Shown here piece after piece: positions 10,520 to 26,965 of a DNA stretch of 64,000 bases. Position numbers and translations under genes: made by a program. The stretch is taken from contig CATNEN010000030.1 in the NCBI GenBank assembly GCA_950097015.1, positions 558,001 through 622,000 of the forward strand, in the 5' to 3' direction. How positions within the stretch are numbered: the first letter of the stretch is position 1; each line of letters starts with the position of its first letter. The notes under the pieces are model-generated. The model did not search any database. It saw nothing but the letters and a program-made list of their open reading frames with translations, and was not told the origin of the DNA. The stretch is from Macrostomum hystrix. Lineage: Eukaryota > Animalia > Platyhelminthes.

Positions 10520-13158
10520 TTAATGTCGCAATCGCGCCTCGCAATCGCCTATGCCGCCATTCATGACAGCCAGGCTGCTTATGAGAGCGAACATGCCCAG
10601 CGAAGGACCGACAGCGCAGAGGAGCAGCAGGCGGTCGATCGCTGAGCCGATCGCAATCCACTCCAGCCTGGAGTCCTGGTCCTCATGACATTTCAGAGTT
10701 GGCTTGGAAACCGAGTCAGAGCTGGCAGTCTCACTGCGCCTGTCACAGTTGATCACCTGTAATCGGAATCAGCGTAGGGATGGCCATTTTTTAATCACAT
10801 CTGGATGAAAGGTGATTCGCTGGCGGAATGCTAAACAGGCCTGTTTGTGTGACGTAGTTTAGTGTGAAGAAACAAAATTCAAACGTTTGTCTTACAACTG
10901 ACGCCCTGAAACCGCACAGGCGGTTGAGAAACAGCAGCCTCAGTGCGCGGTTGCCCACAGGCTTCTCCGATGCAGCTCTCCTGTAGCACATCAGCACAAT
11001 GATGCTGCCCACTGTGCTCAGAGCTGTCACCGCCATGGCCACCGTGAAGTACCAGGCTGGAGAGTGATTGCACACGGTGCTAGCTGTACACACTCAGCAC
11101 TGACTGCTGGCTAATGAACATGCGAGCTAAGCTCAACACATTGAGACTTACTGAGCACAGGCACGGACTCGCTCTGAGCAGGAGTGATGCTGCCAGCCAG
11201 CTGCAGGAACACACTCATTGACAGCAGAATGGCCACATTCAGAGCCAGCCTGTCGCCCGAGTCCGGCGGAATGAGAAACCCGAAGATGCAGGTGACGAGG
11301 ATGAGAGCGCTCGGGACGATGAGCACAGTGACGTAGTAGAGAGGCCTTCTCTGCAATGGGAGTCGGTATGAGGGGCTCCGTTTCTCACCAAAGTGGTGGT
11401 TTTTGCAGCGAGCAACGGAACCGATGTCCCTGGCTGCAGCTACTTGTAATAAAACAGATTTGACAGGTTGCAGGTCTCACCCTGAAGTGGATGGCAACAT
11501 ACGCCTGCTCTTTTTCGCTTTTCCTGTCGACACCAGTTTCCACAGCGATGATGCAGAACTCATTATTGTTAGAGAAAGGCACAAGGTGACCATAGAGAGA
11601 TCGTTGCACAGCGCTGATTCTTTGATGCTTGATACTTCTCATCGAGTTGAAGTAGACCCGGCAATGCTGAGTGTCGAATGGGAAGTCCCTCAGGGCCATG
11701 CTGCACTTGGTAGTGATGCCATAAGCCAGGTTGAGCTGCACTGAGCCGTTCGCTTGTACCTCGGCGAGCTGCTTGCTTATCTCGAAGGTGCGGAGCTCCG
11801 CGCTGAATACGAATGGATATACAATGTTGTAAGTAACAATGTCACTAATGAGAGATCAACGAAGTAGCTCAAAACCTACGGGTTTCTGACCCGGATATCC
11901 GGCACCCAGATCCAGTCCATTGGCAGGAAGATCTCGCTAATCTGGGATAGAGCTGCATCGCCGGACTTGTCCCAGGCCAGCCTTTTGTCGGTCCATTGCT
12001 TGGTGTAAGCGTTTATGAGGAATTTAATAGCCGTTGAGTGTTGAGTAAGATTAAGAGTTACGAGTTACGAGCGTACACACTTGAGTTTGTACTCAAGAGT
12101 CCACCAAATCCACTAACATTGGGACTGAAATCGAAGCCGACTTGCAAACTGTTCCGTCGAACCCAAACCTGTTTCATTAGTCAAGTACAACTTTATTATT
12201 CATTCTGTGGCGTAGAATAGTAAACTAGGCGACCTATCACCCTTGGGGCGATCAGATGCCTCTGAAGCTCGTGACTTTGCTCATAACTAATCTCAAGATT
12301 CAATTGTTGAGTTAGGATTTGAGTCCTAACTGGTCGGTCATCCTGCTGTTCGGCGTCGAAGCTACCTCGAACGCTTAGCTTAGGCTTAGGCTTAGGCTGT
12401 CTTACAGTCTCACCTTGATGAGGTGGGCTTGCATACAGACATCAGTGTCACTCTAAGCCTCAGATGCAGTGGCAATCAGAACCCGCTAGCGATGAACCAA
12501 CTGAATCAGCCAAGCCACCGGCTGCGCCGTTGCCAAGGATAAACCGATAACCTGAATGGTAACTTCTGACGCTGACCTGCAGGTCTTCTCACTAATTTGC
12601 CCCGTAGTCCGCTGCGACCTGCCACTCCCAAATGTACTACGAGATCTTAAGCGCTAGGGACATGTCATTTGCGTTGTAATTCGAGCTGCATACACGGCTC
12701 GTTTAACAATTACGAATAACAATTATGACACATGCCACCAAAGTATTGATTACTGATGGCTTTCTTGATTTTAGAACCGAAAGCACTGACTCACAAAGAT
12801 TATCCAGCTCTCTATTGAAATCAATTGTTTTACAGCGATCTGAAACGTAGCGAGAGTGGGTAGGCAGGTGAAATGTGGTTAAATTTCAGCGAAAAACAGC
12901 ATAGCTTTAGCTCACCACTTCAATCAGCTGGGTGACGATGCAGTCCAATGTGATATGATTAGCTCTGCCATTGTCAGGTGGCGGAGCTACACCCTTGGAG
13001 TAGTGAGTGGTCAGGTTCAACCAGCGGGTCACCAGCTCGTCTGGGGAGACCGCTGCGGCAGGAGCCGTCTGGCAGCGCGCAGAGAGCGGCTTGAGAAGCA
13101 GCAGCAGCAGCAGCAGTAGTGACAGAAGGCGGAGCATGCTTGTGCCCTGTGTCCGCAT
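10520..13158 (-). CDS. Divergent nicotinic-like Cys-loop ligand-gated ion channel subunit, copy A (~440 aa)
   Basis: Exons 13158-12916 (signal peptide), candidate 12452-12414 (least certain), 11998-11880 (QWTDKRLAW...WIWVPDI), 11802-11481 (Cys-loop CSMALRDFPFDTQHC), 11350-11152 (RRPLYY, M1, M2), 11056-10896 (M3) and 10756-10520 (EW...DRL, M4). All GT-AG and phase-compatible. Confidence 0.85.
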
Positions 13159-14006
13159 GCCGTGAACGTAGATAGTAGTTTGCATATATTAGATGGCTTT
13201 GGGTTGAGTATGACCAACAGAACGTAGTTAGCAAACACATCCTTGGACGTTGGCACACAAACGCGGAAATCGCAGAGTAAACACTAACTAGATTGACCGT
13301 GAGTATTTGTGCATGGTAAGCTCTGCAATAAACCTGGAGTATCAGAAACTGCCCCCCTCATTCTCATCTAATTCTGGGGTGGAATGATTATATCCAGCTC
13401 ACGATCCTTAGTCTCGCTTCACACCACGAATTCACATGTTTCACATGATTGCTAATGCATCAGCAATCAATTTAACAGACACGTTCGACGCGACTAGCAT
13501 ACCTCCCCAACCATTTCTGACGAGAAACTATATTAAATAAACGATTGACTAACCTTCTCGACTTCTCAAAGCGAAGGCTTGCGAGATGCGAGTATGCGAG
13601 AGCGGAGTATGCGAGAGACATTGCTAGCGCTGCTTCTCAGCATTTTGTGGTTGGTGGGCATTTAAAATACCTTAATGATCGATAACTTTTTTCTGTCCAC
13701 CCGACTATTTAAAAACTTTAGCGCTGAATTTATTACATATTAATTTATGATTGTGTCTTTTTTAATCAAAAACTGTCGAACACATGCAGAGATATTAGGA
13801 GTGTCTAAGAACTTTTTGGACGCACATAAGCTGCGCTCTCGAGTATCCTAAATTTTATTTTTAAAAGTTGAAGTCCATGACAGGAAAAAGGCAAAATTTT
13901 ATGCTCTCAAACACTTTACAAGCGTAATTTTGTCATCGATTGACTCAAAATTCCACGGTTTCCGAAGCCAAACGTTATCAGAAAATGTTTGCGCGTGAAT
14001 CGGGAC

Positions 14007-16263
14007 TCAACATGCGCTGAATCCGCCTTTCATAGCTGAGCCTATAAGGCACAGCGCAACAGCTACAGTCAAGCAGATAGCTACTGTGACAAGAAGCCAG
14101 TCCAGCACCCGCCCAATATGGCGCCACTCGTTGCAGTGATCCTGAAAATCGACACACACGATTTACTGGCTTAATAAAAGCAAGTTCAGATGAAATGAAG
14201 TTTCGCTATAAAAAGCTGCCTGACCTCGACTTTGGCCCAGCCGCACAGGCGGTTGAGAAACAGCAGCCTCAGTGCGCGGTTGCTCACAGGCTGCTCCGAT
14301 GCAGCTCTCCTGTAGCACATCAGCACAATGATGCTGCCCACTGTGCTCAGAGCTGTCACCGCCATGGCCACCGTGAAGTACCAGGCTGGAGAGTGATTGC
14401 ACACGGTGCTAGCTGTACAGACTCAGCACTGACTGCTGGCTAATGAACATGCGAGCTAAGCTCAACATTGAGACTCACTGAGCACAGGCACGGACTCGCT
14501 CTGAGCAGGAGTGATGCTGCCAGCCAGCTGCAGGAACACACTCATTGACAGCAGAATGGCCACATTCAGAGCCAGCCTGTCGCCCGAGTCCGGCGGAATG
14601 AGAAACCCGAAGATGCAGGTGACGAGGATGAGAGCGCTCGGGACGATGAGCACAGTGACGTAGTAGAGAGGCCTTCTCTGCAGTGGGAGTCAGGTGTAGT
14701 GATAACTTACACAGCACAACAGCTGTCTGTACAGCTGACAGTGACAGTGGCTGTCACCACTGTGTCTGTCCGGTACAGTACATACCTGAAATTTAACCTG
14801 CAATAAAATCTTCTTGAACTCTGGAAACGTGATTGAGAATTTCTCTACAGTTAGCGAGATGTTTGTCGTGCAGAACTCGTTGTCCCGACTGTTAAGCTCA
14901 TCGTAGTATACTCTCGGTGGCCCGCCCAGCTCCAGCTGAAGGAATTTCTGCTTCTTCACTGTGGAGGAAAAGTTGATTTCGCATTGTTGAGAATCGAATG
15001 GGAAGTCTCCGAGCTTCACTGGGCACTTGCTGACTAGGCCGTATGGCATCTCAATGTGCACCGCTCCAGTCGAGGTCACCGATGCAAGGAATTTGTCCTT
15101 GTCAAATATCCGGATATCAACCCTGTGCGAATTTACATCAGGTTATGGGACAGTAAGACTTATAAGATTGTTGCCAGGTGAGCTTCGAGGTCACTCACGG
15201 GTGGTTGAGTGTCACGTCGGGTATCCACAGCATGTCAATGGGCACAAATACCTCGTCCACCGCCGCCAGGCTGGTGTCGCTGGTGTCGTTCCAGGCGAGG
15301 CGGGCGTCAAGCCAGTCCTGCAGGTGTTTCGCGGGGTTTGTGATCTTCTGAGTTCCTAGTAATTTTTGTCCCGGTAATGCAGCGTTTCACCACGTCTGAG
15401 AGGCAGTGAGACCAGTCAGTCAGGTCACATAAATCTTACCATAACGAACCAGAGGTCCAACGATATCTCCTGCTTAACAATGTCCTGAAATGATTTTCGT
15501 CATTGATTAATGAAATGTACCTGTGAGGTAGCCATCCAAGAGTTAGCATTAGCACTATAACTGTGAATGGACTGATCGGCTACCTGCCCATCCGTAATCC
15601 TCACCTACCTACCAATCCGCTAATCCTCACCTACCTACCAATCCGCTAATCCTCACCTACCTACCAATCCGCTAATCCTCACCTACCTACCAATCCGCTA
15701 ATCCTCACCTACCTACCAATCCGCTAATCCTCATGGATCGGCTACCTGTCCATCCGCTAATCCTCACTGATCGGCTACCTACCAATCCGCAAATCCTCAC
15801 CTACCTACCAATCCGCTAATCCTCACCTATCTACCAATCCACTAATCCTCACCTACCTACCAATCCGCTAATCCTCACTGATCGGCTACCTACCAATCCG
15901 CTAATCCTCACTGATCGGCTACCTACCAATCCGCTAATCCTCACTGATCGGCTACCTACCAATCCGCTAATCCTCACTGATCGGCTACCTACCAATCCGC
16001 TAATCCTCACTGATCGGCTACCTACCAATCCGCTAATCCTCACGATGAGGATGTTAAATTTCACAATGTTGGCAGTTCCATTGTCAGGAGGAGGCGCGGC
16101 GCCTTTAAAGTAGCCACCATTGACGATCTTCAGCAGCTGGAGGATTTTCTCGTCGTTGGATATCCGGGCTTGCTGACCAGAGCTTGTGTCCGGATGCGCA
16201 TAGCAATAGATTGAGTATAATGGCCGTGGCTTGGAAGAATCTGATCGCATTTAGATGGGCCAT
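14007..16263 (-). CDS. Divergent Cys-loop channel subunit, copy B; signal peptide out of frame (frameshifted allele, pseudogene or assembly indel)
   Basis: Exons 16263-16026, 15484-15440 (DIVKQEISLDLWFVM), 15317-15199, 15122-14786 (CPVKLGDFPFDSQQC), 14677-14479, 14385-14225 and 14141-14007 (DHCNEWRHIGRVLDWLL...SAC*). ATG 16263 gives MAHLNAIRFFQATAIILNLLLCASG but is one base out of frame with the mature domain near 16180-16190. Confidence 0.8.
15577..16043. repeat. Minisatellite (33-bp and 26-bp units) made from the exon 1 end plus splice donor of copy B
   Basis: Minus-strand unit GTGAGGATTAGCGGATTG|GTAGGTAGCCGATCA repeats the last 18 exon bases and the donor. Confidence 0.92.
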
Positions 16264-16499
16264 GGGTTGGCACAGTTGATCTGACAGTACTCACAGTACG
16301 ATCACTGCATGGAAGGTTTTTATTGTATTCTCAGTCCCGCAAATGCTCCGGTAAACACAGACAGCCCGAGCACTACCATATGGAAACACATTGGAGGGTA
16401 GGAATTGGTCCCCAAACTGACAGTCCATGCCGGACTCATCAACTAACTAATGACTTTCTGACTGATGAAAATAAGGCTTTGAATTGTGGGCTGACAAAC

Positions 16500-17540
16500 G
16501 CTAGGTTAGGGTATTTTTGTAAGTGATGCATCGGACAGAACGTATCTTTTTGCATTGTAGACAACTGCTAGTTGTCTATGGTAAAAGATGTGTGTCATTC
16601 CGGCAGGCAGTTTAATCCCAAGGACCACTAGAAGAAGGACGGGCACTTCGTTTCTTGTAAAATTTATGAAAGTTTGATAACTTTTTATTGGAAGCAGATC
16701 CAACACTTTTCTTTTAAAATAACTTGCAAACATGTTGCTTCAACGAATTTTAAAAAGCTTTATTTATGGATAACTGATGTTCATTTTATTTTCGCTTATT
16801 TATCATGAAGCACAATAGCCAGTCAATAGCTATCTCGCAACAAAATCAACTTTACAGTCCCTTTCTGATCAAGTACAAGCGTATTACGAGAACTATGAAG
16901 AACTTTTTATAAAAGAATCAGTAGGCCTTATAAGCAAATGTTAATGCAATGATGATGCAACGATGCAATGTTGAAAGAACAGCACGGGATCTGCTTCTAA
17001 TAAATATTATAGTTATCAGCATTTAGATGTGAAAAACGTTCTTATCTTGCTAGTGAATTTTTCCGTGAAAATCATCAGCCTTGAATAAATTTTCCAAGCA
17101 TCGAAGTGTCTCGTCCTTCTTCTTCTAGTGGTATTGGCACTATCTTGCTCGACAGTTTCATTTATTTGATGCATGTCTTGTCTCTATAAATCAACATAGA
17201 ACAAGGTTCAGCAGTTAGTTCGCTTGACAAAACCTGCATATAAAGTCAAGAGAGGATTTTAGTCAGGAGCTTTCAGCAGCGCCTGCACATGTTCTAATGC
17301 CATCTTCGACGAATGGTCACCGTTCACTTCCGTTCACTGCGGCCAGTCATTTCTTACCTATCTTCGAATGCTTCACAACGATCTTGGCCTTTAAATCTAG
17401 GCAGAGCGCAACTCTTCTGTCGCCTCCGTTGATAGCGTCGATTATCGATTGGTGTTTTTCGTCGCTATTCGTTGCATATTGCACAGGTGGCGTTCCGGCA
17501 TCTTCGGCAGCGGTTCCGTCGATGTCTTCAAACATGGTTG
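16500..17540 (-). mobile_element. Possible highly decayed pogo/Tigger-like transposase remnant
   Basis: The fragment RRVALCLDLKAKIV resembles an N-terminal psq/CENP-B helix-turn-helix, and PVLLLV...LPAGMTH resembles a DDE_1 motif. Many stops; similarity is weak and judged by eye only. Confidence 0.3.
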
Positions 17541-17809
17541 AATCAAATTGATTAAGTAGTAGTGTCTACAAACTTGCAAAATGCGATATGAGGCTTGCAA
17601 ATGAAATTGGATTCACAAACAATGTGGGTGCGAAAATTTAATTTGTTAGCTAGAAACAATTTATATAATCATTAGATTTAGCTTACAAAAAAATTTAAAC
17701 AAAATTGAGTGAACTTCTAAAAGTGCCGCTTGTACTTGTTTTTCATGAAATTTTCTTTAAACTCGGACGGACGAAATACGACTTCTATTTCGCAATGCCG
17801 TGACTATAA

Positions 17810-19511
17810 TCAACAATTGCCGAAGTTGCTTCTTCGGCACAACACAACACTAGCACACGAGAGGCCGACAGCGCAAACCAGCAGCAGGCGGTCCAGAACA
17901 ATGCCAACACGGCGCCACTCACAGCCGGGCTCGTTGGAGTCGACACGAACACTTTTCAGGCTGCTGGAGTGAGGAGCCATAGGCAGGTTTGGTGAGACCA
18001 AAGTTGGTGAGCTCTATGTTGGTGAGGCTCTTGCAGCCGGGAATATTAACAAACATGGCTTATTGAAATTGCGCATAAAGCGTGGGATTCCACAAAGACC
18101 GAAATTCCACAAAGGCGGAATGAGAAATCCGAAGATGCAGGTGACCAGGATGAGAGCGCTCGGGATGATGAGCACAGTGACGTAGTAGAGAGGCCTTCTC
18201 TGCAGTTGGAGTCAACGGCGAGAGGCTTTTATGCTGTGCATTGCTATGTGTATATTAGCATGTTCATATCAAGCTATCTAATGCCAACCTTAAAGTTGAA
18301 TTTGACAAGAACTTTCTGGTAGAGTTCAGAATAGAATACTTGACTTCCCAGGATAGATGAGGCATCTTGAATGCAGAACTCATTGTTGCGATTTTTTCCG
18401 ACATCTTTTTCTGAGCTTCGTCCTGCACCTGCAGGTGCATTTGGACCTGCGATTTCACAGCTGATGAAAAGCTAACGGTGCACTGCTGAGTATCGAAGGG
18501 AAAGTACTGCAGGTCCATGATGCACTGGCTGGTTACGCCATAGCGAAGGCCGATTCGGACGTAGCCGCTTGAGTTCACGGACGCCAGCAACTTGCTGCTC
18601 TCAAAGTTTCTCACTTCAACTTTGCGTGATTTAAGTGGGTGTCACTATTATCTATTTAGACTAAAATGTCATTAGGTATTTCGGTAGCAACCCTCACGGG
18701 TGGTTCTGTGTCAAGTCGGGCACCCAGATCCAATCCAATGGCACGAAGAGAATCATTCCATGCGAGGCGCGAGTCAGTCCACATCTGCGACAGTTTTTTT
18801 AGTAAGCGACCAATATTTAATTGTCATGTGCGAGCAGCAACATCTGCGCCTCTTCATTTGAAAGCTTTCGACGGAAAATCAAGTAAATACTTACAGAAAT
18901 CCCACTGCGACTTACCATCATAAACCAAAGATCTATTGACACCTGCTGTAAAACAATGTCCTGGAACAGAAGTAGGGACACGTGTTTGAGCTTCCTTGGC
19001 TTATATACTCGTATTAATAAGAATATACTGGAGGGCTGCTGGCATATCATTTGGTGACACTAGACACGCAGCCAGTGAGGAGGCGTGCCCATTTCGCTGA
19101 ACTCCTGAGCACACACGCACACAGATACCGAACGCAGGCACACACTCACTAAGTTTTGTACATCTGCCCTGACTTTCTCATCGTCCAGCAGTGTATAGTT
19201 ATACCGCTCTGCCACTCAGCCCCTGCTTCCTTCGCTTAGATAGAAAAATCGCATTAAGTCCCATCATTCCGCGAATCAAAATAAGCACTTACCACGCGAC
19301 TTCGTTTTAAAAACAATATTTTTACATCCACATTGTTCGCAGTTGCATTGTCTGGTGGAGGTGAAGCGCCCGTGCAGTAGCTGGTGGTGATATTCAGCAG
19401 CTGAATGATCTTCTCCTGGTTGGACATTCGCGCCTGCTGGGCTGAGCAGGTGATCTCAAGAAACTGCAGCAGCAAGTGCAGGGCTGCAAGGGGCTGCAGT
19501 CTGCCCCACAT
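17810..19511 (-). pseudogene. Cys-loop channel pseudogene, copy C
   Basis: Exons 19511-19293, 18960-18916, 18784-18698 (87 nt versus 119 nt in paralogs, a 32-nt frameshifting deletion), 18621-18289 (acceptor reads CAA; 1-nt deletion in an A-run near 18395), 18199-18114 (M1 only, breaks after FLIPP) and an M4 relic at 17810-18001. M2 and M3 are absent. Confidence 0.9.
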
Positions 19512-20237
19512 AGTCAGAATGTTTGCGATACAGGAGAGCCCCATCGGGAGTTTTAAAATTGTCATTTGCTGGCTCCGGTTTGACGTAAATTGCCTGCATT
19601 TATGTGCACGGTTTGACTGGGTAATCATTGAGCAGCATTTGCTCACGCAGACCTTCGGTCAATAACTTCTGTCAATATAGCCGACGGTACTGGACTCAAA
19701 TATTTATGGCAGCGCTTCGGCAGATTTTAATTCCCTTCACTAGATTAATGAGCCTGACAGACCGCAATCTGATTGAGTCCGATACCGAACTTAATTTGGA
19801 GAGAATAATACACGCAAAAAGGCATGTATGTGAGGTGAGAAAAAGGTGAGAAAAAGGTGAGAAAAGTGCTCGAATGCAGAGCATGGACCACTAGTAGTTG
19901 GTTTCAATTTTTTATTAATGGGTAGTCAATGCTGGTACCCATTCTACAGCTGCGTGAACTGAAGCGATGGAATACAAGAGCTGTGTACGCCCTTGAAGCG
20001 ATTAAAGACAAGGACACATAAAGAGTTATGCTCTTTGAAGCTCTAACAACTTGGGCTAAAAGTCAAGTAATAATAGTATTAAAAATATTTCCAGTACTGC
20101 CCATAAAAAAATCGATCCTACAAAATATTGAATAATGTTAGTTCGTATCTAAATTTTCTCCCAGTCAAAAAGCACTCGGGAAACACGAATTCACGAGTAG
20201 TAATAGACAATGGCATCCACTTTGGCTTGGGCTTATT

Positions 20238-22190
20238 TCAGCAGCTCGAAACCCCGTTCTTAATGGGCACAATGATCAGGAGCAGGACAGCGGCTGAGGC
20301 CAAGCACAGGGCGCAGCCGGCCAGGAGCCGATCCACCAGTGAGCCGACCCGGCGCCACTCGCCTCCTTCATCTTCGCCGCCCGACCTGCCGCACAGCCGG
20401 TTGAGAAATAACAGTCTCAACAAGCGGTTCCTCACGATTTCCTGCGATGCAGACTTCTTGTGGCACAGCAGCACAATGACGCTGTTCACAGTGCACAGGG
20501 TTGTGACTGCCATTGCCATCGTAAAGTACCAGGCTGAAAATTTGTGCAGTTTCTTGGAGAATTAAATACCAAGCACAATAATGCCAATGCTTATCGAATG
20601 ATTCCTTATCTGAAACTCACTGAGCACAGGTACAGACAAACTCTGAGCAGGAGTGATGCTGCCAGCCAGCTGCAGGAACACACTCATTGACAGCAGAATG
20701 GCCACATTCAGAGCCAGCCTGTCGCCCGAGTCCGGTGGAATGAGAAACCCAAAGATGCAGATGACGAGGATGAGAGCGCTCGGGATGATGAGCACAGTGA
20801 CGTAGTAGAGAGGCCTTCTCTGCAATGGGAGTCAGGAGTCACAGTCACTATGGCTTTTTGGCTTACCTTTTTTTGCGGCAGGCCCAACTGCGGATGGCTA
20901 ATTGTGTCGTTAAGTGCTCATACCTTGAAAGTTATCGTCACATCGACTGACTTGTAGTTATCGCATAAGTTAGAATCAATCACTGTGATTTCCTTAGTGC
21001 AAAATTCGTTGTCTTCTTTGTTGAATTCTTCTAAATTAGTTTTATTTCCTAGGTCCACATTCACTCGCAGGTGTTCTTCTGTCTTTACGGCAGATGAGAA
21101 TCTTATTTTACACGTCTGCGTGTCAAACGGGAATTCCATCAGCTTCATTGAGCACTTTGCGGTCACTCCGTATGGCGTGCCGAACAGTACGGTACCGTTC
21201 GAGTGCACAATTGACAGCAGTTTATTGCTCTCGAAATTCCGAATTTCGACTCTGTTGTTTAATTTTGAAAAAAGTCAACGACTTGACAGGTTTTTGTACC
21301 GTCTCTGTACTCAATGACAACTCAATACTTAGCACTGCTCAAATGGGCTCTTACGGGTGGTCTACGGTCAAGTCAGGCATCCAAAGCCAGTCATTCGGCA
21401 GGAATATCTTCTCAACTAAGGCGAGGCTGGGGTCCTTAGTGCCATTCCAGGCAAGGCGCCTGTCAATCCACTTCTGAAATTTCGCAATGAGATTTATTTT
21501 CGACTGGGGTTCTTTGGATGTGAATGCTCCTATCAGAATTTTGTGCATTGTAGTGTGGTTTTAAAAGTGCTTAAAATGTGCTTCGCTTTTAGTCCTTTTC
21601 AGTTCAGTCTCGCTTAATCATTCATTATCCTAATTGCCTGTAACTTTAGGAGGCCAAGGTTGATGTTGTGTACCGAAATTTGATAGTCAGCTGGTGTTTA
21701 TATTTGTTCTTGTTTTTAAACTCAAGAATGAATACACTATTCAGGCAGTGATTTTGAATAGTGCACAATGACGTTTTACAATTACGAGTAGATAAGTTAT
21801 ACATTGAAGCCATCCTTACCATGGTGAACCAGAAATCCAATGATACTTGCTGCTTCACGACATCCTAAAGGACATTTATAATTTACGCATATGCATTTTA
21901 GCTTAACTGAAAATCAAATCAGCAAGTAAAACCAATTGACTAACCACAGCGCTAAGCTTTGTAACAATAACATTCACAGTCACCGTGTTGGCTGTTCCAT
22001 TGTCTGGTGGTGGCGAGGCACCCTTGCAATAGCCCGTTGTGAGATTCAGCAGCTGGATGATTCTCTCCTGGTTGGAAATCACGGCCTGTTGCTCATTAGC
22101 CATGCAGGGGTTTCCATGCAGTGCCTGCAGCAGCAGCAGCAGCACCTGCAGGGTGGCCGCCATCGGTATAACAATCAGCTTTGGTCGCAT
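20238..22190 (-). CDS. Divergent Cys-loop channel subunit, copy D (~410 aa, intact, 6 exons)
   Basis: Exons 22190-21945, 21864-21820, 21473-21355, 21251-20924 (CSMKLMEFPFDTQTC), 20819-20621 and 20533-20238 (M3 to M4 with no intron). All junctions GT-AG and in phase. Confidence 0.92.
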
Positions 22191-22520
22191 TAGCCAGCCA
22201 GACTAATGTAATAGTATCAGCTCGCTCTATGGTGACCAAAACTGAGCTGCGTATGTCGTATTTAAGGAGTCTAAAATGAGTTCATCTGACTTCGTGTGTT
22301 TGCACAATAGCCAGGTATGTTTGCGTGCGTTTGCAGATTGGCTCTATGCGAGTGATTTGGATCAGGGCTATTTGGATTGTTTATTGGTAGCAGTGGATTG
22401 CAGGACATCAAGAAGGAGGGCATATGCAATAATCAATGCATGGAGCCATTGGATATTGGGTTTAACAGTGGGGTGAGGGTCGGGTATGGCTGGCAGCCAA
22501 TACTGGTAACAATAGCATTC

Positions 22521-22945
22521 CCCAGTGCAAAGCCACTGGCCGGTCTCTCCTCCTATCCCTGCAGTGTTAGCCTTCCCCAGTGCAAAGACATTGGTCGGTC
22601 TCTCCTCCTATCCCTGCAGTGTTAGACGTCCCCAGTGCAAAGACACTGGCCGGTCTCTCCTCCTATCCCTGCAGTGTTAGCCGTCCCCAGTGCAAAGCCA
22701 TTGGCCGGTCTCTCCTCCTATCCCTGCAGTGTTAGCCGTCCCCAGTGCAAAGGCATTGGCCGGTCTCTCCTCCTATCCCTGCAGTGTTAGCCGTCTTCTA
22801 AGACTTCTAAAACTGGCTGTAGTAAACATAAAAAGAAGCACACCAGCCGACGCGGAAACGGCGCCAACGGCAAGCAGTCGGTCGATGCTGCGGCCAATTT
22901 GACGCCACCCAGTGCAAAGACATTGGCCGGTCTTTCCTCCCCACT
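22521..22945. repeat. 55-bp minisatellite interrupted by an M4-exon relic of the channel family
   Basis: Five units start at 22521, 22576, 22631, 22686 and 22741. They are followed by 22796-22907 (minus strand WRQIGRSIDRLLAVGAVSASAGVLLF, near-identical to copy E M4) and a partial unit at 22908. Confidence 0.85.
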
Positions 22946-23572
22946 CCGTCTTTTCTCTCGCGATGTACAGAGAGGGCGATGGGGCAAGGCCTGCTCCAAG
23001 GTTCGTGAGATCAAAGGAAATAGAGGATGCGCCTGTGATGACAAGGATGCACAAGGATGTGTAAAAAAAAACCGCGTGTGTTCCCCAAAAAGGTGACAAA
23101 ACTTGCTAGTTATTTGAAAGTTCGCAGTCGACAATGATCCACAATTTCATCGTCAGAGTTAAAGACTCTTGATTCTATAGCACAGAACCTCATGGAGTGA
23201 GGAGTTTGGACAGTCTTCAAGATTTAGGACTTGAGAGTATTCATTTCGAAACAGTTGCAGTCCACTCATGTGCTTTACTTCAATTCGCTCATAAGTCGAA
23301 ACGCCTCTGGTCCACATAGTTCGTACATGATTTATACGGTCGGACCTGCAGCAACAATAGTGATCGGCATTGTATTTCAAACTTTCACAATCCTTTCTCA
23401 TTTCGTTATTTAACCTGTCCCAAGAGCGATGGCTGTGTAAAAGAGAGAGTTCAAGGCTATTTCTGAATGATTTGTTAACAATTAGTTCTACAGTCTCAAA
23501 GAAAGCATCAGGCTTCATTAGGCTCCATATAGCTTATATCCTTTCATGATTGACGAATGCCACTGTAGCACG

Positions 23573-26500
23573 TCAGGGGCAGCTTAATGGGCCATTGCCG
23601 TAGGCTGCAGCAAACAGAAAAAGAAGCACACCAGCTGACGCGGAAACGGCGCCAACGGCAAGCAGTCGGTCGATGCTGCGGCCAATTTGACGCCACTCGG
23701 CGCCGTCAACTGGAGCATTCTTTGCCATTGAAGACGAGCTGGGAGCAGGGTCAGCAAACTCTGACACATCATCGGGCTTGACCACCGGCTGAAGAGTGAT
23801 ATTTGATCTTGGAGGACTCATGTTCTTGTAAGAAAAGCTGCTTATCTCTCAAATAATTATCTCACCTCGCCTTGGGCCCAGCCGCACAGGCGGTTGAGAA
23901 ACAGCAGCCTCAGTGCGCGGTTGCTCACAGGCTGCTCCGATGCAGCTCTCCTGTAGCACATCAGCACAATGATGCTGCCCATTGTGCTCAGAGCTGTCAC
24001 CGCCATGGCCACCGTGAAGTACCAGGCTGGAGAGTGATTGCACACGGTGCTAGCTGTACACACTCAGCACTGACTGCTGGCTAATGAACATGCGAGCTAA
24101 GCTCAACATTGAGACTCACTGAGCACAGGCACGGACTCGCTCTGAGCAGGAGTGATGCTGCCAGCCAGCTGCAGGAACACACTCATTGACAGCAGAATGG
24201 CCACATTCAGAGCCAGCCTGTCGCCCGAGTCCGGCGGAATGAGAAACCCGAAGATGCAGGTGACGAGGATGAGAGCGCTCGGGACGATGAGTACAATGAC
24301 GTAATAGATTGCGAGTCTCTGGTAATGGATGAGTTCGCAGATTCTGTGAAGTCTTGTACTATAAAATGTGCTACCTGTTTCGACTCCTAGCTCTCGTTTA
24401 TTACGAAGCCACAGTTTGTATTCCCACCTTAAAAACGACAATGACGGTCGCCTGTTGATATTCTCCGTAGACGTTATGCAGCTTGGAATCTATGTCGATT
24501 ATGCAGTACTCGTTGCTGCGCAGAAACTTTATTGAATAGAGGATGGCCGGGCTCTGCTGCACCACCAGCTCCATGGTGCTCTTCGGTTTGAGCGCAGCCG
24601 AAGCCATACTGAAGGTGCAGCTCTGCGAGTCGAATGGAAAGCTTTCCATGTGCATGTTGCACTTTATTGTGACGCCGATGGGGTGGTTCACAGTCACTTG
24701 ACCGTCTGACCGGATGTTGGCTAACAGCTGGCTGCGGTCGTAGCTGCGGATCTCTGCACTGGATGGACGGGGAGAAACAGGCGCATTTGTAAACAGCGCG
24801 AATCATAAATATTCTCAGGCAAATAAATTGATGTTCCTGGGAGCTTTATGACGACTTTAATGTGACTTCAATTCATCTTGGAAACCATTTTGTCACAGGC
24901 TTATCTGTTAAAGTAGAAAGTGTTTGTGCCTCTCGCACCAAGTTCCCTGAGCTCGATTCCGCGGCGAGGCCGCATTCATTTGTGGTGCAGCCTCGGAGAG
25001 AAGGCTTGGGGGCTTGTCATGTATTTTACGCTCTTGAGGGCAAACCTCCAAGGCACTGTGATAGTATATACTGCCTGATGATGAGAAAGTCAGAGCAGAT
25101 GTACACACTTATGTGGCCTGTGCTCAGGAGTCAGCGAAATAGCAGAATTGCCTCCTCGCTGGCTGCGGGTCTACTGTCACCAAATGATGTGCCCGCAGCC
25201 CAACAATAATTATTATTGTTTGTATTACTGCTGGAATTGATGCTTCTCAGACAATTCCTGGAAGCCCCTAAACTTTGCTAGTGACAATTGAAATCGTCAT
25301 TGAAGAAGCTGAGAAAATCGTGTGGATCGAAGTTAAAGCCTGGACTAATCTCACGGCTGATTAATGTAGACGTCAGGTGTCCAGACCCAGTCCATCGGTG
25401 CGTAGATACTTTTGTTTTTGCCAGCCAGTTCTGCGCTGGCGAGTGTACGCCAGGCCAGCCGAGGGTCGGTCCAGATCTGCGATTTCGAAGGAATTGGCCA
25501 AGGCTAGGTTTCATTTCTTAGAATGCTTAACAGTAGAAAGACCGCGCTGATATTAAAAAAACTGAATGACCAATTTTCGTGAAAGTCTACCATGGGTAAA
25601 CATTTTTCGCCCTATATACGATGAACTAACTTTCAAAGCCGTCAGCATCGTCGAGATATTCTGCGACTCTTGTCGAACACCATGGTGACAAGGGCAACAA
25701 ACACTGCTCAATGGCGAATCCAGATTGGTGAAATAATTAACACTACATTAGCATCAATAATTACCTATACTGGTGGTTTTTGCCACCACACCCGACGAGA
25801 ATCGTGAATATCTCGATGCCTTTTGATTATGAAAGTTTTTTAATCGGATAGAGGGGAACATTTTAGCCCGTGTTCTGGATTTTCATGGCTAACAGTTAAA
25901 TATTTTGGAAGATGAATGTAAAACATGTGTACCTGAAATACCCCGTGGTGTTTGCCTGTTTCTTACCATTGCGATGGTGCATTCCAGTGTAACCAGCTGC
26001 TTGACCATATCCTGGAACGAAGAAGTTATCCATTGAAGAAATATTCACCTTAACTATGATGAGGAAGTTGGGGGTGAGTGGCAGAGCGGTTAACGCGTTT
26101 GCCTCTCGCACCTAGGTCCCTGAGCTCGATTCCGCGGCAAGGCCACCTTCATTTCTGGCGCAGCCGCGGAGAGAAGGCTTCGGGGCTTGTCGTGCAATTT
26201 ACGCCCTTGAGGGCCAACCTCCAAGGCACAGTGGCAGTGTAGACTGCAGGAAAATGAGAAAGTCAAGCACAGAAGTTCATAGTTCGTACATGATTTATAC
26301 GGTCGGACCTGCAGCAACAATAGTGATCAGCATTGTATTTCAAACTTTCACAATCCTAGTTATTTGTAGCCGTCTTCTAAGACTTCTAAAACTGTCTGTA
26401 GTAAACATAAAAAGAAGCACACCGGCCGACGCGGAAACGGCGCCAGCAATCCAGCAATGGCAGATGTACACACCTGTGTGAGCGTGTGCCTGCGTACAGT

Positions 26501-26965
26501 ATCTGTGTGCGCGTGTGCTCAGGATTCAGCGAAATGGGCAGAATTGCCTCCTCGCTGGCTGCGGATCTAGCGTCACCAAATGATGTGCCATTGCCCGCAG
26601 CCCTCCAGCTTATTATTATTATTATTTTATTATGACGAAGTTGGAAAACGAATTAGATTTCATATAAATCGCGAGTTAGTTAACTGAATTCTTTTTTTGC
26701 ACTTTTTAGATCTGTCTTAGAGAATTATGTCACTTCTGCTCACCACATTCATCAGCTTGACCAGGTTGATCGTGATGATGACGGTATGAGCGGTGCCATT
26801 CGCTGGCTTCGGTGACGCGCCCTTGTTGTAGCCGCCTGCATCGGTGAGGTTTAGCAAGCGAATGACCTGGTCATCGGTAGATAGCTCCACTGAGGCAGCT
26901 GCTGGCGATGGCTGCTGCCACGGAAGAGTCAGCAGCAGAATAAATAAAGTCCGTCTCAGAAGCAT
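23573..26965 (-). CDS. Divergent Cys-loop channel subunit, copy E (~443 aa, intact, 7 exons)
   Basis: Exons 26965-26744, 26011-25967 (DMVKQLVTLECTIAM), 25476-25355 (IWTDPRLAW...WVWTPDV), 24758-24428 (CNMHMESFPFDSQSC), 24318-24120, 24026-23866 and 23824-23573. All in phase; the last intron is only 41 nt. Confidence 0.92.
24912..25222 (+). mobile_element. tRNA-derived SINE, family 1 (5'-degraded copy)
   Basis: B-box-like gagctcgattcc, a body shared with the 26070 and 33221 copies, and a 3' end caccaaatgatgtgcc followed by a (tta)n tail. Confidence 0.8.
26070..26630 (+). mobile_element. tRNA-derived SINE, family 1, carrying a ~190-bp insertion of local sequence
   Basis: Head ggtgagtggcagagcggttaacgcg...gagctcgattcc and a (tta)n tail. 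Sequence between ~26267 and ~26458 interrupts the family motif gagaaagtca|gggcagatg. Further partial minus-strand copies at ~19043-19190, ~28664-28885, ~37870-37997 and ~60770-60965. Confidence 0.85.

Follow-up and report, generated by a model that had tools for sequence, protein, structure and literature searches.

Probable recurrent gene conversion confined to the pore module of a tandem cluster of Cys-loop channel genes in Macrostomum hystrix

The flatworm Macrostomum hystrix carries five tandem Cys-loop (nicotinic/5-HT3-like) channel genes, here called A to E, in a stretch of 64,000 nucleotides of its genome (assembly GCA_950097015.1, contig CATNEN010000030.1, positions 558,001 to 622,000 of the forward strand). 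This whole stretch is referred to as the window, and all coordinates are counted from its first letter unless another contig is named. The genes occupy positions 10520-26965 on the minus strand with a spacing of about 3.3 kb. Their duplications are old, having occurred before the split from Macrostomum lignano, yet A, B and E share a young block, about 1% diverged, that covers the M1-M2 exon, the short intron 5 and the M3 exon. The assembled sequences of the two species indicate that this pore module has very probably been subject to recurrent interlocus gene conversion (concerted evolution), to which the other parts of the genes were not exposed.

Results

A tandem cluster of Cys-loop channel genes

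Gene models were assembled from open frames, alignment of the paralogs and GT-AG splice sites. Exons were searched one at a time, and joined coding sequences were built from window coordinates only for codon alignments. The genes follow a seven-exon plan (six exons in D). The first exon encodes the signal peptide and strand beta-1 and is followed by a 45-nt microexon and two ligand-binding exons; the membrane part is divided among an M1-M2 exon (199 nt), an M3 exon (161 nt) and an M4 exon. The reading frames of A, B, D and E are open, and C is a pseudogene.

Gene A, 10520..13158, minus strand: seven exons, open model of 441 codons; matches to Pfam families PF02931 and PF02932; all introns GT-AG; spliced frame open
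Gene A exons, minus strand: 13158-12916, 12839-12795 (microexon), 11998-11880, 11802-11481, 11350-11152 (M1-M2), 11056-10896 (M3), 10756-10520 (M4)
Gene B, 14007..16250, minus strand: seven exons, 400 codons
Gene B exons, minus strand: 16250-16044 (donor site possibly 18 nt further on), 15484-15440, 15317-15199, 15122-14786, 14677-14479 (M1-M2), 14385-14225 (M3), 14141-14007 (M4)
Gene C, 17810..19658, minus strand: pseudogene, judged from its reading frames; frameshifts in exons 3 and 4, M2-M3 deleted, M4 kept at 17813-18013
Gene D, 20238..22163, minus strand: six exons, 401 codons; intron 6 absent
Gene D exons, minus strand: 22163-21945, 21864-21820, 21473-21355, 21251-20924, 20819-20621 (M1-M2), 20533-20238 (M3 and M4 fused)
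Gene E, 23573..26965, minus strand: seven exons, 431 codons
Gene E exons, minus strand: 26965-26744, 26011-25967, 25476-25355, 24758-24428, 24318-24120 (M1-M2), 24026-23866 (M3), 23788-23573 (M4)

A shared block spanning the pore exons

A repeat search and BLAST located the shared block at the following positions.

10912..11364, minus strand: putative conversion tract in A; last 14 nt of intron 4, M1-M2 exon, 95-nt intron 5, and M3 exon through the RLCG codons
14241..14691, minus strand: putative conversion tract in B; its M1-M2 exon is identical to that of A at 199 of 199 positions
23866..24308, minus strand: putative conversion tract in E; it ends at 23882 relative to A, and similarity to B continues to the M3 donor site at 23866
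20621..20833, minus strand: older, exon-sized tract in D; M1-M2 exon and 14 nt of the upstream intron
18114..18213, minus strand: M1 remnant in pseudogene C; 100 nt, 95-96% identical to A and B

Aligned over 453 columns, the tracts of A and B show 5 mismatches and one 2-bp indel (98.5% identity), and in the core that E shares with them (A coordinates 11325-10912) identity is 98.6% for A-B, 98.3% for A-E and 99.3% for B-E. A preliminary description of the window had reported a near-identical block of about 450 bp in these three genes with a handful of differences, and the values above bear it out; the positions that it gave for A and B are essentially those found here, but the tract in E reaches 24308 and not 24290. 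By segment, identity amounts to 91-100% in the M1-M2 exon and 94-98% in the M3 exon. Intron 5, which is 93-95 nt long, is 95.8-98.9% identical among A, B and E, whereas against D it falls to 38-40% and is unalignable. Gene D had been described as sharing only the M1-M2 exon at high identity, which agrees with our measurements: D is 95.5% identical to A and B in that exon and 77% in the M3 exon, and its region 20389-20833 is 80.5% identical overall to the block.

The ends of the tracts are sharp on both sides, as identity drops within a few bases to 30-47%; for the 60 nt on either side of the block it is 24-47%. They also differ from pair to pair. The A-B tract begins 14 nt upstream of the M1-M2 exon, while the tract in E begins about 10-24 nt inside this exon, the first 24 nt of which are specific to E; at the other end, the similarity between B and E extends 16 nt beyond the 3' limit of A and reaches the M3 donor site. 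These pair-specific ends, together with the exon-sized tract in D, point to several events of different age. The remaining segments (four more exons, five more introns and both flanks) show 46-71% identity when aligned globally, close to what unrelated sequences give. No further copy of the block was found in the 220-Mb, 42-contig assembly, and the block is thus confined to the cluster in the window.

Nei-Gojobori estimates of synonymous divergence (dS), non-synonymous divergence (dN) and the proportion of synonymous differences (pS) divide the genes in the same manner. Among A, B and E, dS ranges from 0 (A-B) to 0.076 in the M1-M2 exon and from 0 to 0.027 in the M3 exon, whereas the ligand-binding and M4 exons of the same genes are saturated, with a pS of 0.64-0.87 and a dN of 0.4-0.8. 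The preliminary description had likewise noted the divergence of the extracellular and M4 exons. A GENECONV-style permutation of polymorphic sites, a check that it had also called for, gave P <= 1e-4 for A-B, A-E and B-E. The same test on pairs with D was weak or not significant (P 0.008-0.6), and the evidence for a tract in D lies instead in a dS of 0.10 in the M1-M2 exon, compared with saturation elsewhere, and in its exon-sized limits. The GC content at third codon positions (GC3) reaches 0.73-0.77 in the exons of the tract; outside it, the value is 0.62-0.64 for exons 1, 4 and 7 and 0.74 for exon 3. The GC content of intron 5 is 0.49-0.51 in A, B and E compared with 0.34 in D.

The cluster in Macrostomum lignano

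The sister species was examined in an independent public assembly (GCA_002269645.1). With the M1-M2 exon as the query we obtained M. lignano proteins whose ligand domains are like those of A (P0004), B (P0003) and E (P0005, its ortholog). All three bear a single version of the pore module, which is specific to M. lignano. Collinear genes in the order D'-B'-A' lie on three M. lignano contigs (L051-L053), and on L051 these genes are 96-97% identical to one another across the M1-M2 exon, the intron and the M3 exon. The comparison with a sister species that had been suggested at the outset thus revealed a cluster that is likewise homogenised, intron included, but to its own version. Between the species only the exons align (88-90% identity in M1-M2, 86-89% in M3) and the introns are unalignable. 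The dS of the pore module is 0.02-0.08 within M. lignano against 0.2-0.45 between the species, the proportion of non-synonymous differences (pN) in the pore exons between species is 0.04, and the paralogs of a species have species-specific substitutions in common. The loss of intron 6 in both D and D' supports the orthology of these two genes.

Maximum likelihood trees, with bootstrap and approximately unbiased (AU) tests, were calculated separately for the ligand domain and the pore module. In the ligand-domain tree A is joined with A' (support 91/88) and a species clade is rejected (AU p = 0.003). The pore-module tree, on the other hand, separates the two species, as do 100% of its bootstrap trees, and clades of A with A' (p = 5e-5) and of B with B' (p = 3e-35) are rejected by the AU test. 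Each part of the genes therefore rejects the grouping found in the other, an incongruence that the preliminary description had proposed to look for and that indicates concerted evolution of the cluster.

Other clusters of the family

The M. hystrix genome contains at least 61 Cys-loop M1-M2 exons. Two sister clusters, on contigs C32 and C10, combine 82-96% identity in the M1-M2 exon of their paralogs with 25-47% protein identity in the ligand-binding exon; in the C32 cluster the pS of M1-M2 is 0.12-0.3 compared with about 0.7 in the ligand-binding exon. The M3 exons of the C32 and C10 clusters are only 60-70% identical. Because M1-M2 identity is lower in these clusters and their M3 exons have diverged, the cluster in the window is the youngest case, and the one with the longest tract, of a family-wide habit. 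On other contigs there are more distant paralogs, whose pore exons are about 50% identical in protein. The closest of those outside the cluster, with 56% protein identity in the pore exon, is apparently a single gene on contig C33 (C33:2566127-2566324, L025); it has an M. lignano counterpart (P0007) with about 89% protein identity in the pore exon, and the pair is a candidate unconverted control for dating.

Receptor identity and gene structure

The PF02931 profile (Neur_chan_LBD) matches exons 3 and 4 of A, exon 4 of B and exon 4 of E above its curated cut-off, and PF02932 (Neur_chan_memb) matches the M1-M2 exon. In all five genes, A to E, the translation of exon 4 shows the Cys-loop itself, with two cysteines 13 residues apart and an FPFD motif. 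For the M1-M2 exon the closest matches are nicotinic acetylcholine receptor (nAChR) alpha7 and 5-HT3A (E-value about 1e-12); it aligns with nAChR alpha7 over 65 residues and contains the acidic residue before M2 and the LLS core, while M3 and M4 were assigned by inspection and paralog alignment only. Comparison of the ligand-binding exon with solved structures gave no close relative, only marginal matches to glycine receptors (E-value about 0.009). By inspection, the exon 4 translations contain neither the vicinal cysteines of loop C (the CC pair) nor the loop B Trp after the Cys-loop. Since this CC pair and Trp of the acetylcholine site were not found in exon 4, we class the genes as putative nicotinic-like orphans and not as acetylcholine receptors in the strict sense. 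Literature searches gave no paper on Macrostomum ligand-gated channels that treats this channel family.

Several features of the gene structures are recorded here in their own right. The 45-nt microexon, which is in phase 0, encodes the beta-2 strand and is flanked by AG/GT, is conserved in all five genes (minus strand, 12795-12839, 15440-15484, 18916-18960, 21820-21864 and 25967-26011). It is also kept in M. lignano (L051 1253-1297 and 6183-6227), and the public protein model of the A ortholog (P0004) skips it. In gene D (20238-20533, minus strand) and in D' of M. lignano (L051 3751-4047) M3 and M4 are encoded by a single exon, and the loop joining them is reduced to about 15 residues, since intron 6 is gone along with most of the cytoplasmic loop; in the remaining genes the cytoplasmic loops are likewise very short for animal Cys-loop receptors.

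At the start of gene B (16044-16290, minus strand), a signal-peptide-like hydrophobic stretch that begins at an ATG near 16264 is out of frame with the mature ligand domain, and the in-frame ATG at 16250 leads to no convincing signal peptide; the mismatch could be due to a recent frameshift, an assembly indel error or a small unrecognised intron. A tandem array of 26/33-nt repeats (15579-16076) starts exactly where exon 1 of gene B ends, and its units copy the end of the exon together with the GT donor, so that several equivalent donors stand in series. Two orphan M4-like exons lie on the minus strand, one between E and D (22772-23012) and one in the first intron of E (26351-26560). Their cores of about 100 nt are 93% (the 22.8-kb copy) and 63% (the 26.4-kb copy) identical to the M4 of E over 101 nt, and they have in common a 3' end that differs from that of E's M4. 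An 80-nt stretch near the two copies (23315-23394 and 26278-26357) is 99% identical. The orphan exons may be relics of a lost gene, products of a small segmental duplication or alternative last exons. A further tandem array between E and D (22458-22795) has a 55-nt unit in at least 5 copies with 92-94% identity.

Discussion

The homogenisation of the pore module is non-reciprocal, recurrent, lineage-specific and bounded on both sides, and its outcome is a common pore and membrane core behind diverged extracellular domains. The preliminary description had argued that identity across an intron speaks for conversion rather than for selection alone. This argument is strengthened by the contrast in dS, the position of the tract ends, the piece of the tract in pseudogene C, the separate version in M. 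lignano and the conflict between the trees. Pseudogene C is not under selection at the protein level and nevertheless retains 100 nt of the tract at 95-96% identity.

Several points weigh against conversion as the explanation or limit what can be said of it. Conversion events are deduced indirectly, from assembled sequences. GC3 is only mildly raised in the tract, so that the signature of GC-biased conversion is weak. Between the species the pore exons have a synonymous divergence of 0.2-0.45 and the ligand-binding exons a higher one, of 0.9 to over 2; this difference reflects either extra constraint on the pore exons or a bias of the estimator in fast-evolving regions. Finally, that the tract ends are set by the loss of homology, and not by selection against converting the sensor exons, is itself a conjecture.

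Among the alternatives, a one-off replacement of the module, by exon shuffling or by an unequal crossing-over that made chimeric genes, fares best, although we consider it improbable. A single non-reciprocal transfer would likewise leave identity across an intron, but a single unequal crossover would have homogenised everything downstream, and M4 and the 3' flank are fully diverged. Moreover, the tracts vary in their ends and ages (about 1% divergence among A, B and E, 4.5% in the exon-sized tract of D, which is older, and a remnant in C), and the module has been homogenised independently in M. lignano and, for the M1-M2 exon only, in other clusters.

It is less probable still that purifying selection alone, including selection on synonymous sites or on an RNA structure or an editing site, keeps the pore modules identical. 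Intron 5 is 96-99% identical among A, B and E, yet unalignable with D and with M. lignano; the same codons have a dS of 0-0.03 within the species and of 0.2-0.45 between the species; the paralogs share species-specific substitutions; and part of the tract persists in a pseudogene. This holds even though no part of the protein is more conserved than the pore exons, as their pN between species illustrates, and even though their synonymous divergence lies below that of the ligand-binding exons both between species and between contigs. A constraint from RNA structure or editing found no support, as the block folds with the energy of shuffled sequence (z = -0.07). An artefact of assembly or polishing, by which the copies were collapsed or homogenised to a consensus, can be set aside as scarcely credible: multi-mapped reads can indeed erase true differences in short near-identical blocks during polishing, but blocks of about 450 bp here stand in unique flanks 3.3-13 kb apart, where a collapse would have removed whole genes, the copies retain private differences and different tract ends, the block recurs nowhere else in the assembly, and the independent M. 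lignano assembly gives the same pattern on three contigs with its own sequence version.

We propose that gene conversion would act on this cluster through a series of linked steps. Purifying selection would keep the pore exons similar enough to pair in recombinational repair. A tract that begins in the M1-M2 exon would carry intron 5 along, finish in the conserved last part of M3 and go no further, as the flanks are too diverged to pair. In this manner the M1-M2 exon, the short intron 5 and the M3 exon would be overwritten repeatedly between tandem paralogs, the other segments would be spared, and every conversion would renew the homology required by the next one. That the limits lie at the start of M1 and after RLCG in both species would then follow from tracts stopping where homology ends.

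The preliminary description had summarised the arrangement as a constant channel with variable sensors. The phrase describes the pattern correctly; selection in favour of it is conjectural, and homology-limited conversion of the most conserved exons explains the pattern equally well. A stronger version, in which pore homogenisation is favoured by selection because a shared M1-M3 core lets the subunits of the cluster co-assemble as pentamers, and is not a by-product of homology, appears rather unlikely to us. Pentamers would combine one fixed gate and conductance with a different extracellular sensor on each subunit, giving a combinatorial receptor; the 'constant region' would be maintained by conversion instead of by shared exons; and the same tract limits in two species, together with the pore-exon tracts in several clusters, would reflect selection on the placement of the tracts.

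Gene conversion of this kind is itself textbook knowledge from TLR1/TLR6 and the protocadherins. In mammals, regional conversion between TLR1 and TLR6 has occurred in independent events in nine species, and the transmembrane domain lies within the converted tract (Kruithof et al. 2007, PMC2077338). As in the channel cluster, the genes are tandem paralogs, a C-terminal region including the transmembrane domain is closer between paralogs than between orthologs, and conversion is independent in each species with nearly equal tract limits, while the part that recognises the ligand diverges. Unlike TLR1/TLR6, which are two genes of another protein family, the channels form a cluster of five genes with further clusters elsewhere, and their tract crosses an intron and has its limits in two separate exons.

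The clustered protocadherins of fugu, zebrafish and human also undergo regional gene conversion (PMC1852091; Noonan et al. 2004, as cited there). As in the channels, one portion of the tandem units, here the 3' portion of the variable exons, has become uniform within each lineage (>99% in fugu), the N-terminal ectodomains that carry specificity are diverse, and trees have to be built from the unconverted part. Their tracts, however, lie within one large exon and have a clearly raised GC3, whereas the rise in the channels is weak; and protocadherins splice to true shared constant exons, which the channel genes do not. In having tandemly expanded subunits of nicotinic type, a pore like that of cation channels and a ligand-binding domain that has diverged, the cluster resembles the lineage-specific nicotinic-like expansions of lophotrochozoans, the cephalopod chemotactile receptors among them. 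Literature searches on gene conversion brought up no relevant work on Cys-loop or pentameric channels; the search listing of a paper on such expansions (PMC6896357) counts no occurrence of the term, and in one review (PMC11526382) gene conversion appears only in a cited title about other gene families. The cluster is a well-supported case of this known process in the pentameric channels, for which no report was found.

As an example, from two species, of concerted evolution restricted to one domain in an ion-channel family, the cluster is unusually clear: the line between what is kept constant and what is free to diverge is also the line between pore and sensor. The M1-M3 exons have to be omitted when phylogenies of these flatworm receptors are built or orthologs assigned, as the genes otherwise group by species. 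Subunits of the cluster, with their common channel core, may co-assemble, as the pattern suggests.

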